Shown: piece by piece, positions 25,226 through 30,641 of the stretch
How positions within the stretch are numbered: the stretch's first letter is position 1
How the letters are laid out: each line of letters begins with the position of its first letter
NCBI RefSeq assembly: GCF_006345805.1
Contig: NC_043026.1
Coordinates: forward strand, 14,983,579 to 15,047,578
DNA from: Octopus sinensis
Taxonomy: Eukaryota
Direction of reading: 5' to 3'
Length of the DNA: 64,000 nucleotides
Notes under the pieces: generated by a model
Seen by the model: the letters and a program-made list of their open reading frames with translations, nothing else
The model's database searches: none
What the model was told of the DNA's origin: nothing
Made by a program: the position numbers and the translations under genes

Positions 25226-28200
25226 ATGGAGAAGATTAATGAAGAAAACAAAATGTTGGCTCTCATTCCTGCCACAGTCTGTGAAACAAGACCAATTTAT
25301 AAGGAAACTACACCAAATCTTCCCCAAATATTACATACACAAAACACAAAGAAAACAGAAGAACAGGAAAGAAAAGACACAAAGAAATCTGAGGAACAGG
25401 AAAAGTCCATGTTACCAAGTTTTCTTCATATTGTGACATGTTACCGAACACTAATCAAAACAGACCACATCAATACGTTTATAGATTATGTAAAGGATAA
25501 ATGTAATCAAATGGACTCTCTGGGTTTAAATGGATCTCGTGTTTTACATAATGTCAAACGTAAAATGCCAAGATTTCTGGAATTTGCAAAACAAAATAAT
25601 GATTTTGTTCACCAAAACCTTGATTGGTTTCAACAAAGACTCTGTGACATTTATGTCACCTGTAACCCATACAACCACAAGACCATTGAACCACCAAAAG
25701 TAACCACAAAATTTCGGCCTCTTCGGCCAGCTGTGACCACAGAAACAAGGATTGAGGAATCTGGTGAAGACTTAAGCAACCCAATATCCAATATTGTTGT
25801 CATACAAGGGGGTATTGTAACATATTCCCGCCACTGTATGACAATATGTTGTGTAACAAGAGACGGCAACAGAAATGAAGTTCATTGCTCATCTTCTGTT
25901 ACTGACTTTACTAGAATCAGTCAAGACACAGTCCTGGCCACCCTACCCTTCAAAAAAATGATTCTTATTATCAACCCTTTAAGTTTGGAAATCAAAAGAA
26001 TTCAACTAGGATTAATCTTGGTTTCTTATTTGGAACATTCTACGCTTATAGGTGTAGAAATGTGTTGGTCGGACCATATACGTCATTGACTGGGAAGAGA
26101 ATAGAATAAAATACAAATTCATAACCAAAGAAACACCAACAGATATTGCTGTAGGAGCACAAAATAAACTCTTAGTATCCTTTTCCAGTATTAACAGGGT
26201 TACCTGTTACAATGTGGATGGCCAGCAGTTATTTGAGGTGGATACCAATTCCCTGGACATTCCAAGCCACATCACTGTGTACCAAAACCATTTTTATGTC
26301 CTCCAGGGACATATTATTTATCGGATATCAGGTACAGGTGCTGTGACAACAAGAGAAATTGGCATGAAATGCCGCCATATTTCTGTTGGCAAAGAAAACA
26401 TTTTTGTAACCGATTATTTTGATGCCCTTCATATCATTGGAACAAATGAAGACTTTTGGCCCAGGCAGTCATATAACCCTCAGCTATGGAGCCCAACATT
26501 GAACAACTGTATTTATATTGAGGATTGCTACAATATGACTAATATTCTACCTATGTCTACATCTTCTATATTAATATTCTACAGGAATAATAAAGCTATA
26601 TTATTCACTGAGACTGGAGAAATAATTAACCAAAATAATTCAACTTTCCTTGAGATTCCTTCTTGCTTTTGTAGAATGAATTCTAAAGGATTTCTGGTGT
26701 TTTACCGTGAAAACAAAGAATTTCAGTGTATCACATGCCCTGAGCTAATGAAAGGCCCTTTAATGAAAGTCCATACTGATTACATTAAACTATGTCATGT
26801 TGTATCAAATAAGTGTTTAGCTCTAACCACAAATGGAAACAAACACGAGGTCCATATCCTCTTGATCAACGAAGATAAAGTTGACATTGCAGAAAGAATT
26901 TCTCTGGGACATCATAATGTCAGCATTGCTGCAACTCCAATTAATTTTGTAGTCGTAGATGGAAGCGAAAATAAAATGGTATTTTATTCCACATGTGGTG
27001 AAGAACTTTTTCAAAAATACCTTCCATTCTATGGCTACCCTCATCACATCTACTCTGATAATGTTTATTTCTATGTCCTCTTCAAGAGACACTCTGTTCT
27101 CAGATGTTACGATCTATATGGAGAAATGAAATGGCAGTGGGATCTGCCCTTCCCTGTTCACCCTCACATTGCTGTTTTCCAAGGAACTCTTTATGTCCCG
27201 GACACTCAACTCAACAGGGTTCATCTTTATAAGTACCAAGACCGGTCGTCTGGCTGTTGTTTACACACAAAAAATCCTTACATCAGAAATCTAAATCTAC
27301 GACTCAAAGAAAAGGAGAATGACCAAAAACTTGTCATTGGCGAAATATGTTATCTGTCCAATGGACAGTTGGTGGTGTCTGACATCAACCATGATTGCTT
27401 GTTATACATTTCTGAGGAAGGAGACATTGTGTCCAGATTATCTCTGCCGTCTACAGCCACAGATATATGTCGATGGGATTCTAATCATATAGGTGTCACA
27501 TTACCCCTACAGAAACAATTATGGGTCATCGGAAACCTATCAAAGACAGTGAGAAGTGTATCATTAAGGCAGCCTTATGTACGGGTGTGTAAGATGGGTG
27601 AAGGTGAAATTGTTTGTTATTGTGATAAACCATCACATTTAAACATTTTAGCCATCATTTATTATAATCAAGTTGAAGTAATTAAGACAATTAATATCCC
27701 TGTTTTTGTGAAATCATTATCAATAGACAAGAAAACAGAAAAGCTATTAATTGTTACTAAGGAAAAAGTTTTTCAGTACAACACTAGAATAGGTGGTGGT
27801 GGTCATGGCGGTCGTCAAATGGTCCCCAGTGTTTTAATGTCCCAAGTGAAACGTCCTCTCAATCTCCAAGGTGGATCTATTGACCAAACGTTTGTTTATC
27901 TGATAGACAGAAGCCGTATGTTTGCCATAAACGATCATAATTTGTTGGTTAATGATCTCGTTACAAATAATCAACTTAATTATTATATCGACCTGGTGGA
28001 TGTATTTTCCAGAAACATTTCTGTCAGTGAAATGTTGTCTTCCACTTTACATCTACAGGACCTGACAGTTTCTGATAAAGCCAGACATATTCCTCTCCCT
28101 CAACATTTGGGAGACAAAGGACCAGCAGAGATTAGATCTTTGGGTCTTACAGAAAATAATCTGATTGCAGGATGTGACATGGAGAATGGAAACATTAAGA

Positions 28201-30641
28201 TATTCACATTGGATGGTCACGCTTTGGATTCAATCAAAGTGAATGTTCATAGATATATTAAAATGTGTCGATGGCAGTCAAACACACTGGTCATTATGAC
28301 TGGGGATCGTAATGATGATAATAAACACCAACTGTTGACATTAAAAGTGGAATTTCCATTGTCGTTGGTAATTTACCAAACGAGAAATAATTATGAATGT
28401 GTGGCTTCTTTATCAAACAATCAACTGATTTTTAGTGATTGGAGAGATGGAGATCATTTGTATTTTGTTGATATTGATGAAATACATTCCAGTGTGGAGG
28501 AAATAAAAAAAATAGACATACCTGAACCATTAAGAATGAGAAAAGAAGATGGAAATTATTTTGATAGAATCCATGATATTAAAGTTACTTCTGAAAATGT
28601 CATCATTGTCTTCAACTGGAGATTCATCATTTTCTTCAAAAGTAATGGTCAATATCTACATTCAGTCAGACACTACATGCTGTATGATTATTTTTTTAGG
28701 GGTGTTGATGACAGGATGACAATTGATGACAGTTTTTTGTACATTTATGGTCAGTGGGATAAATATTTTGGTTTCTCTGGATATCGAAACATTTTGTGTT
28801 TGACCCAGAATGGGGAATACAAGAGAATATTTTTAAATAAAAGAATTTATAAAAATGAAGTATATTTCTCCAGTATAGACTGTAAAGGACCAAGGTTTGT
28901 CGGAAGTCTCACGAGGGGAAGGAGAGAGAATGAATTGTATGTTGAAGGGTTGTTTATGGTGAATCGAGACAGCTTCACGGTTGCTCGTTTACAAACAGAC
29001 GAATGTCCTGTTCAAGTAAAAGATTTTGATGTTTCTGAGGAAGGAAAGACAGTTGTGTGTGAAAAAGTCAATAATGGAAATGTTAAAATATTCGATGAAG
29101 ACGGCCAGTTGCTATGTCACAGAAATGTTGCAAGTTTAGTTGGTGGTGTGTGTTTTGCACAAGAATCACACATAATGGCCACGGTTCCTAAAAGGAAAGA
29201 AATATTTCAACTGAATGGAGAAGATTTGCAGACATCTCAAGTTTGGTCGAGTCTCATCCCTTATGGTGTAATATGGAGAAAAGTGGGGGGTATTTACTGG
29301 TGTGTACATATTGAATTGATTGAATGTCATTGCATAAAGATTGATGGGGACCAAGTGAACATTCTGGAATCTGTGTCGTCATTAAATCTTGATTCTGGTC
29401 TTCATTTCCCTTCCATTACATCTGAAACGAACAAGGAAATATTCAGTAAGGAATTAATTAATAAATTGGAATACAGAGGAGGAGATGGAGATGGAGGAGG
29501 AAGAAGAAGAGGTAAATCAGGTGAAATAATTGGTGAAGGTAGATTAAAGGTGAGATGTGGTAATTACATAGCAGAGATTAATAATTCAGGAATTGATGAA
29601 ATATCAGTGAGGAGACTTCCATATAGGACAGCAATGGTCCCTCTTTCCATTCCTGCATTCAAGGAACCTGTTGATTATGATTTTAGGGACATTAGGGACC
29701 GGAACAGTAAACTAATTAAGTTAGATGAAAATGTGAGTGTGTTGATGTTTCGAGAAAGTGTCACATTAATCAGAACAACAACAACAACAGTGGACATACT
29801 TCAACATGAACAACAACAACGACCACCCCTGGACATATGTCGGTGGACAGAGGAATGTTTCATTGTCGCCTTTGGGAGAGAAATGACGGTCTTCAACAGG
29901 GATCTCCGTCGTTTAAAAACCATCAGAACTGAGAAATACTACAACAGGATTTATAAATACAATGACAATCAACTCGTGTGTGGTGGTCATTATTTTAGAG
30001 ACATAACTCAAGAAGAGAGACACAAGAAATACCAAAGAATATGGAGAAACAACAAGTTTTACTATTATTGCGATGACCCCGACACCTTTGACTCTTATTA
30101 TGTGGATGTGGTTGATATCAACGATGGGAAATGTAAAGATGAAGTGTGTGGTGGGAAGATGGGGAGATTGGGAAGGTTTGAGGGAGATGAAAGGGTGGAT
30201 GGTGTGGGAGTCACATCTTTTGGTGATGTTGTTGTTTTGAGGAGGGAGATGGAGGAGGAGGAGAATTTTGGATATTGTGAAGCTTTGTGTCTTGTGGAAT
30301 GGTTCAGGGAAAAGTCTTTGGTGAGGAGGATAGGAATAGAAGGAGGGATGTTTTATGGTCGGGGATATGTAATAAGACCTCGTCTGACCATAATTGGTGA
30401 ATGTGTTTATATAACAGATTTAAGAAACAATATTTACGAAATACCTCGACATATTGAAGAGGAAACATCTGAAGATGATGAAATCCTGATATCTGAAGAT
30501 AATCCAAAATATTTACTCCTCAGATGGGATGATAATGAAGTGTTTGAAGTTCTTGGTTTGGATGTTTCAGACAATTCTTTGATGGTTTTTGGAATTATTC
30601 CTGGACGTCAATCTTTTGCTTTCTTTTATTTTGACAAATAA
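25226..30641 (+). CDS. Large multi-beta-propeller protein, copy 1 (~1804 aa if one base near 26064 is removed): short N-terminal region plus about six tandem NHL/TolB-like propeller modules
   Basis: ORFs 25226-26089 (287 aa) and 26214-30641 (1475 aa). The second frame is open from 26058. Copy 2 reads GAA ATG TTT GGT CGG in frame where copy 1 has one extra base. Blade-like repeats include TPTDIAVGAQNKLLVS, IGEICYLSNGQLVVSD, ATDICRWDSNHIGVTLP, VKDFDVSEEGKTVVCE and PLDICRWTEECFIVAF. No obvious signal peptide or TM helix. A candidate acceptor TTTTTTCAG at 25109 means an upstream exon is possible. Fold assignment is by motif resemblance only. Confidence 0.8.

Follow-up and report, generated by a model that had tools for sequence, protein, structure and literature searches.

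A tandemly expanded octopod gene family predicted to encode proteins with six NHL-derived beta-propellers

What kind of protein is encoded by the long coding region on the plus strand of contig NC_043026.1 of Octopus sinensis, and does it belong to any known class? The stretch analysed here (64,000 nucleotides, positions 14,983,579 to 15,047,578 of the forward strand, hereafter the window) lies on a 15,106,159-bp scaffold of a 2.72-Gb genome assembled in 13,516 contigs, and the coding region of ~5.4 kb runs from an ATG at 25226 to a stop at 30639-30641. Animal proteins normally carry a single NHL propeller, a module well known to bind RNA and proteins, and usually have it behind an E3-ligase tripartite motif. 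A sequence-only reading of the locus had proposed about six NHL-like propellers in tandem. The comparisons below make it very probable that the locus represents an octopod-restricted family with intronless coding sequences (CDSs), whose products combine an N-terminus of ~186 amino acids (aa) with six NHL-derived propellers and carry neither RING nor B-box. Taken as a whole, with identity, architecture, origin and mechanism together, the account is one towards which we lean. The six-propeller architecture and the family are new, the NHL domain itself being already known.

The six modules were delimited from the strings given in the sequence-only reading, which are present at exactly 25784, 26535, 27330, 28128, 29010 and 29688. 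Measured module lengths of 226-317 aa agree with the spacing of ~230-320 aa estimated there. The coding region is divided as follows, with confidence given by the predicted local distance difference test (pLDDT) of AlphaFold2.

25226..25783, plus strand: N-terminal non-propeller region, ~186 aa, with predicted disorder and, around residues 65-151, helices of low confidence
25784..26534, plus strand: propeller 1, six blades, holding a frameshift (AlphaFold2 domain 189-405, pLDDT about 65-84)
26535..27329, plus strand: propeller 2, six blades (AlphaFold2 domain 437-668, pLDDT about 73-88)
27330..28127, plus strand: propeller 3, last two blades of low pLDDT yet aligning to NHL blades 5-6
28128..29009, plus strand: propeller 4, six blades, with a hypervariable face of B-C/D-A loops (AlphaFold2 and HHalign)
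29010..29687, plus strand: module 5, a probable propeller and the weakest case (AlphaFold2 pLDDT below 50)
29688..30638, plus strand: propeller 6, with long hairpin inserts (AlphaFold2 pLDDT up to 92)

A blade-2 motif, which had been noticed in several modules, was found at the same relative position in all six (TDFTRISQDTVLATLP, SCFCRMNSKGFLVFY, TDICRWDSNHIGVTLP, IKMCRWQSNTLVIMT, GGVCFAQESHIMATVP, LDICRWTEECFIVAF), and the propeller 3 module contains a Gly-rich insert (GGGGHGG). A BLASTP self-search of the 1527-aa part of the protein detected no internal repeats at E<=10. As BLASTP was blind to the repeats, profile methods were needed, and a 33-member family alignment was cut at the module boundaries and its pieces compared by HHalign. 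In-register matches linked modules 3 and 6 (93%, E=3e-7), 4 and 6 (88%), 3 and 4 (62%), and 4 and 5 (44%); the remaining pairs matched weakly, several of them in register.

The relationship of the modules to NHL propellers was likewise visible at the profile level. Pfam gave no above-threshold match in the window protein or in 20 family relatives, none of which matched Pfam NHL even at E<=1; the distant member P0067 had a sub-threshold NHL match (18.5 bits against a cut-off of 20). A PDB sequence search with the window protein also gave no significant match. Among 1.84 billion representative proteins, the profile built from modules 3-6 matched only 32, and the sole animal match outside octopods was a 656-aa protein of the cuttlefish Acanthosepion pharaonis (P0085; E=2.4e-5). 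This match covers profile positions 249-498, corresponding to module 4, and lies over the propeller of P0085, which is a RING, B-box and NHL protein by Pfam and whose NHL domain, used as a single sequence, matches family loci with E down to 4.4e-7. Many P0085-related intronless RING/B-box/NHL genes of 570-830 codons are also present in the O. sinensis genome. As a homologous-protein search with the cuttlefish NHL domain returned just P0085 itself, a TRIM-NHL template alignment was built from own-genome open reading frames (ORFs). It comprised eight cephalopod TRIM-NHL-type propellers, seven from the same genome (L046, L047/L040, L048, L049, L039, L042 and L044) and that of P0085; in Pfam scans of five of them, the NHL cut-off is reached by P0085, L046, L047/L040 and L048, and L049 has no NHL match.

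Against this template, HHalign gave 92.0% for module 1 (E=6.6e-7), 92.9% for module 2 (E=3.7e-7), 98.1% for module 3 (E=1.1e-13; 226 columns), 98.3% for module 4 (E=1.2e-14), 79.5% for module 5 (E=1.5e-5; 127 columns) and 95.8% for module 6 (E=7.7e-9). Every match begins at the module start and spans 127-226 columns, and a reversed-template control gave probabilities below 1%. The shared motif reads ...ngQlVVSDin..cLlYis.eGdIV..lsLPS.ATDICrWD...iGVTLPLeKqL versus ...g...VsD..n..ik.F...G.ll.....s.P.gic......vvvtlP....I. A PDB profile search returned 13 weak matches (E 0.2-3.5), 11 of which were NHL domains of TRIM71, Brat, TRIM2 and TRIM3. The term NHL-like, applied to the modules in the sequence-only reading, is thus sustained by in-register homology to cephalopod TRIM-NHL propellers at values below the Pfam cut-off. 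These alignments argue strongly for descent of modules 1-4 and 6 from a TRIM-NHL-type propeller, and make the same descent probable for module 5.

Structure prediction was consistent with six tandem propellers, as had been proposed, to a degree that differs among modules. The intact same-genome paralog L012, 92% identical over an 800-aa query, was modelled by AlphaFold2 as two overlapping pieces with a 20-sequence family alignment, and pLDDT was mostly 65-92 across the confident domains. Residues 1-187 were predicted as disorder and low-confidence helices. Modules 1 (residues 189-405) and 2 (437-668) are all-beta, each with 23 strands in six groups of four, and module 4 (969-1236) is all-beta with 23 strands and an N-terminal closing strand, so that the predictions for these three modules (23-24 strands) correspond to closed six-bladed propellers. 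Module 3 (704-about 852) is all-beta with its first four blades reasonably confident, module 5 (about 1236-1467) stayed at pLDDT below 50, and module 6 (about 1469-1799) is all-beta, confident yet less regular, with an ambiguous assignment of strands to blades. Foldseek against the PDB matched exclusively tandem-propeller proteins (E 1e-22 to 1e-10, ~10% identity), namely IFT-A WD40 pairs, Utp21, LRP4/LRP2, DDB1 and Apaf-1. The template modelling scores (TM-scores) of these matches are low because domain orientations differ, and a whole multi-domain search cannot assign the propeller superfamily because any tandem-propeller protein dominates the matches. The beta-propeller fold class of the predicted models is secure.

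The window copy itself is not the uninterrupted reading region that had been described. As assembled, it lies in two stop-free frames, 25211..26089 (292 codons) and 26058..30641 (1527 codons), and translation from the ATG at 25226 stops at 26087-26089 after 287 codons. The features concerned are the following.

25226..26089, plus strand: 5' part of the gene, frame A, from the ATG to a premature stop at 26087-26089 made by the frameshift
26058..30641, plus strand: main open frame B, 1527 codons, closing with TAA at 30639-30641
26063..26064, plus strand: one-base insertion (frameshift), located by comparison with the second window copy and 17 intact paralogs
30637..30642, plus strand: AATAAA, a possible polyadenylation signal read from the sequence, overlapping the stop codon
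45875..51267, plus strand: second tandem gene copy, a pseudogene in at least four frames, 94.7% identical in DNA

Against P0004, an intact paralog from O. vulgaris, identity is 91% for the frame A part (P0004 residues 1-278) and 87% for frame B (residues 280-1798); because alignment with intact ~1800-aa relatives spans both, the two frames form one gene. Frame A tracks the relatives as far as ...LIGVEM and frame B resumes at GRTIYVIDWE.... At the junction the window gene has ATGTGTTGG, where the second window copy and the 17 intact paralogs comparable at this site have ATGTTTGG; the surrounding DNA reads GAAATGTGTTGGTCGG in the window gene and GAAATGTTTGGTC... in the others. One extra base at 26063/26064 therefore shifts the frame, at the place where removal of one nucleotide (~26064) had been suggested for joining the ORFs. 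All 1527 codons downstream remain fully open, which points to a very recent change or an assembly error, and the window copy is either just inactivated or mis-assembled; in the latter case the gene would be intact, with 1804 codons.

If the propellers are of TRIM-NHL type, the gene could be an ordinary TRIM-NHL gene whose RING, B-box and coiled-coil exons lie upstream and are spliced at 25109, with only the number of propellers unusual. The homology of the modules is compatible with this, as are a polypyrimidine-AG acceptor-like site at 25100-25110 and the helices predicted at residues 65-151, which might be what is left of a coiled coil. However, the in-frame codon at 25208-25210, situated between that site and the ATG and 18 nt upstream of the latter, is a TAA, so exons spliced there cannot extend the protein, and the upstream RING/B-box exon for which the acceptor was to be checked is excluded. 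In every fetched paralog, too, the open frame is directly preceded by an in-frame stop and reaches its first Met after 0-26 codons, and gene calls in O. bimaculoides and Argonauta hians are uninterrupted (CDSs of 5205, 5139, 5562, 5043, 5025 and 5742 nt), the models having a single coding exon and the same starting Met. Pfam found no RING or B-box in the window protein or in 20 family members, and no match below E=1 came from tblastn of the 64-kb window with the RING-B-box-coiled-coil part of a cephalopod TRIM. For the N-terminal 186 residues no similarity was found to any sequence, TRIM N-termini included (HHalign to TRIM RING/B-box/coiled-coil regions, 0.1%). Hidden upstream exons are accordingly considered highly improbable. 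The window protein also has no signal-peptide-like N-terminus and no transmembrane segment (maximum Kyte-Doolittle 19-residue mean 1.43), as the sequence-only reading had stated along with the lack of RING and B-box.

One ORF was considered as a missing link between TRIM genes and the propeller family and was rejected. L045 (G000:C21:16208500-16217500, ORF 1881-7388, minus strand) is intronless, has 1836 codons and begins with a RING and a B-box; the ~1600 residues after the B-box are Ser/Thr/Pro-rich, have no Pfam match and are unrelated to the propeller family, making it an unusual TRIM-like gene.

The family was found to be large in O. sinensis. With an 800-aa query, at least 56 paralogous places were found in the genome, a number that is a lower bound; they lie mostly at 3.4-15.1 Mb of the window's scaffold, many others being on small unplaced contigs. 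Open frames of at least 1750 aa occur at about 25 of these places, and 18 of 20 fetched paralog loci have a single open frame of 1786-1939 aa. All strong profile matches came from Octopus vulgaris, O. sinensis, O. bimaculoides or Argonauta hians, the Argonauta members having 1913-1925 aa. A restriction to octopods (three Octopus species and Argonauta) is what these database matches indicate, and the proposal of a lineage-specific, unnamed family accords with the search of 1.84 billion representatives, which gave members in Octopus and Argonauta alone. In databases the family is labelled solely as 'uncharacterized protein', and no relevant paper came up in literature searches on the family, on its LOC identifiers or on TRIM/NHL expansions in cephalopods.

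In the family tree, the old lineages are the LOC106882419 group, Argonauta, the LOC106880634 group and the groups on C25 and C28, while O. sinensis and O. vulgaris copies form a short-branched crown clade that includes the window copy, beside L012. The LOC106880634 ortholog is single-copy and located on another chromosome; between O. bimaculoides and O. sinensis it shows 91.8% identity, dN 0.038, dS 0.098 and dN/dS 0.39 (dN and dS, nonsynonymous and synonymous divergence). The family has grown by tandem segmental duplication, mostly on one scaffold, with birth-and-death turnover and mosaic homogenisation of its copies. The N-terminal region is the part most divergent among paralogs and exists in two types: the first ~170 residues (MEKINEENK... 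or MEDQTENT...) look unrelated to each other and are both joined to near-identical propeller regions, which suggests that paralogs swapped 5' ends by recombination or conversion.

Divergence among copies is unevenly distributed along the gene. In pairwise comparisons of 19 own-genome copies, dN/dS was 0.30 in module 1, 0.44 in module 2, 0.56 in module 3, 0.91 in module 4, 0.67 in module 5 and 0.92 in module 6. Within the latter, residues ~1601-1750 are highly variable (0.93-1.34), with ratios of 1.1-1.3 at residues 1651-1750. Values of dS ranged from 0.04 to 0.68 along the gene, a signature of mosaic gene conversion.

The variability of propeller 4 was further resolved by loop class, with strands ordered as in the model and blades placed in the NHL register, where the module start is strand A of blade 1 (HHalign). 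All 11 B-C/D-A loops, named 'top' by the usual convention, are variable (pN, nonsynonymous differences between copies, 0.13-0.37), whereas all 11 A-B/C-D ('bottom') loops are conserved (pN 0.01-0.12); this assignment of loops to top and bottom depends on a predicted model and a convention, which counts as a caution. On ungapped columns, pN/pS (the ratio of nonsynonymous to synonymous differences) was 1.23 in top loops (bootstrap 95% confidence interval 0.92-1.70), 0.84 in strands and 0.33 in bottom loops (0.19-0.58), and top loops differed from strands and bottom loops together (permutation p=0.011), with the further caution that pairwise counts are phylogenetically non-independent and gene conversion distorts dS. 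No such excess was seen in modules 1 and 3, and it was weaker in module 2 (0.94). With top loops variable and bottom loops conserved, the copies differ chiefly on one face of propeller 4. In characterised NHL domains the ligand site lies on the corresponding face (RNA in Brat and LIN-41).

The same variability would also be expected if the family were functional and the loops of propellers 4 and 6 dispensable and under relaxed constraint, the protein being a scaffold with one common function. The interval of 0.92-1.70 for the top loops includes 1 and the strands of module 4 also stand at 0.84, both of which suit this explanation. It has difficulty with the strict alternation of 11 variable and 11 conserved loops, and a large recent expansion that keeps intact copies is typical of diversified families. 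Relaxed loops are regarded as a rather unlikely explanation of the pattern as a whole, and diversification of the propeller 4 face is tentatively preferred.

Doubt of another kind concerns whether the family has any organismal function, as it could be a decaying or selfish repeat (mobile-element cargo or a pseudogene array) whose long ORFs would persist only because the copies arose recently and gene conversion keeps them alike. The high copy number (at least 56 places, many on small unplaced contigs), the high dN/dS (median 0.64, up to about 1), the conversion indicated by dS of 0.04-0.68, the broken state of both window copies and the lack of transcript-derived proteins in databases would all suit such a repeat. 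Yet about 25 frames of at least 1750 aa stay open at dS up to 0.4, where neutral drift should, by our estimate, already give several stops per 5.4 kb at dS 0.06. The single-copy LOC106880634 ortholog, which lies on a different chromosome, has stayed intact in both species compared (dN/dS 0.39), Argonauta retains members of 1913-1925 aa, and ratios are low in module 1 (0.30) and in the bottom loops of module 4 (0.33). Moreover, the duplication is tandem and segmental, with a unit of ~20.6 kb, and the sole mobile-element hallmark in the scanned ORFs is a secondary reverse transcriptase insertion beside the second window copy. A functionless repeat is therefore judged improbable, and the 5.4-kb single-exon ORFs are best annotated as real genes, many copies, including both in the window, being pseudogenes or assembly-damaged.

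For a functional family, the following mechanism may be proposed. A TRIM-NHL-type propeller would have been multiplied six-fold inside one exon, yielding a protein without an E3-ligase module. This protein would act as a cytosolic multivalent binding platform, its location being suggested solely by the lack of a signal peptide and transmembrane segment. The more conserved propellers 1-3 (dN/dS 0.30-0.56) and 5 would hold common partners or the architecture, and the B-C/D-A face of propeller 4, probably with part of propeller 6, would form a variable target-recognition surface, so that each paralog would recognise a different target. The face-specific variability of propeller 4 lends some support to a function as multivalent sensor or binder, which had been put forward as a possibility from the sequence, and the variability pattern fits a recognition or conflict-type role, e.g. 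in innate immunity. As a mechanism, the multivalent binder with a diversified face is nonetheless tentative.

Several observations weigh against the account developed here. No family member reaches the curated Pfam NHL threshold (PF01436), so NHL membership rests on profile-profile homology, and module 5 is modelled poorly with about half of it aligned. The window gene as assembled is unable to make a full-length protein, and in database cluster look-ups every family protein came from genome annotation and none from a transcript assembly. The median pairwise dN/dS of 0.64 among the 19 copies is high overall, relaxed constraint, instead of positive selection, could account for the near-1 ratios of modules 4 and 6, and the confidence interval of the top-loop ratio includes 1. 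Net charge per module ranges from +3 to -14, and such near-zero or negative values offer no support for RNA binding.

A still more specific proposal is that octopods possess an intracellular, diversified recognition repertoire of dozens of tandemly duplicated, gene-converting paralogs with six NHL propellers each, differing chiefly on the ligand-binding face of propeller 4 and in part of propeller 6, which we consider speculative and unlikely. Were it true, it would constitute a previously unrecognised invertebrate repertoire of variable receptors or restriction factors, directed e.g. against viruses, transposons or particular RNAs. The family ranks among the larger tandem expansions of recent date that occupy a single chromosome. 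It is also a candidate for a recognition or defence system specific to one lineage of cephalopods, a group in which little is known of immune repertoires. The one-face variation of propeller 4 offers a concrete, testable hypothesis for a target-binding site.

Among known systems, the closest are the TRIM-NHL proteins (LIN-41/TRIM71, Brat, TRIM2, TRIM3, TRIM32), whose propellers are homologous and six-bladed as here and whose blade-2 motif D-I-C-x-W ... V-T-L-P is common to the octopus modules. An intronless CDS is shared with the cephalopod RING-B-box-NHL genes (P0085; own-genome L047, L048, L049). The octopus family differs from TRIM-NHL proteins in having six propellers per chain instead of one, no RING, B-box or detectable coiled coil, and so no E3-ligase module, sequences that do not reach the Pfam NHL model, and dozens of copies. 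LRP2, LRP4 and LRP1 likewise carry several six-bladed YWTD propellers of ~260 aa along one polypeptide, but they are secreted or membrane-bound and have their propellers separated by EGF and LA modules, whereas the octopus protein lacks a signal peptide, transmembrane segment and EGF. No sequence homology with LRPs was detected, and Pfam Ldl_recept_b or EGF had no match in the window protein or in 20 members, which leaves the resemblance to the YWTD class at the fold level. Tandem WD40 proteins (IFT-A subunits, Utp21, EML, DDB1, Apaf-1) are the best Foldseek matches as multi-propeller architectures, but are seven-bladed with two or three propellers, show ~10% identity and TM-scores of 0.1-0.3 to the octopus protein, and gave no profile-level homology. 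In fish finTRIM and primate TRIM5/TRIM22, examples of TRIM families expanded within particular lineages, the C-terminal recognition domain (B30.2) is diversified. These families resemble the octopus family in tandem expansion and variable surface loops of that domain, and differ in using B30.2/SPRY instead of NHL and in keeping RING and B-box.

Around the gene, the window contains the following elements.

21868..31035, plus strand: segmental duplication unit holding the first copy, partner at 40588-55961 (window self-blastn)
51408-55716: retrotransposon insertion 3' of the second copy, with minus-strand ORFs at 51922-52431, 52524-53699 and 53660-54205
24403..24595, minus strand: inverted copy of coding bases 25384-25576 (95.9% over 193 bp)

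Self-blastn paired 21868-24385 with 40588-43032 (86%), 24479-30779 with 45143-51408 (94.7%), and 30810-31035 with 55716-55961, giving a duplication period of about 20.6 kb. The insertion at 51408-55716 interrupts the duplicated unit; it encodes a reverse transcriptase (Pfam RVT_1, E=7e-28) and, after it, a PHD-like finger. The nearest paralog (L002/L011; G000:C30:15086520-15088910, minus strand) lies about 39 kb past the window end and is 95% identical, in opposite orientation, with one TAA interruption; as it is interrupted too, the local cluster holds at least three damaged copies. The inverted 193-bp copy sits 631 bp before the ATG. The second window copy and L012 have it upstream as well, L023 has a variant of it, and 14 other paralogs lack it; were it transcribed together with the gene, it could pair with the 5' end of the mRNA in a hairpin.

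A dispersed minisatellite is represented at 57210-58772 by a tandem repeat that is open in five of six frames, with a period of about 63 bp according to self-match spacing, and related blocks occur at about 194-465, 2118-2334, 5945-6185, 18407-18788, 39438-39628 and 51576-51824. An assembly gap of 100 N is located at 61953-62052. An ORF at 8271-8750 (plus strand) has a partial cyclophilin-type match (Pfam Pro_isomerase, E=5e-12, profile positions 19-60) and is probably an exon or a retro-pseudogene fragment.

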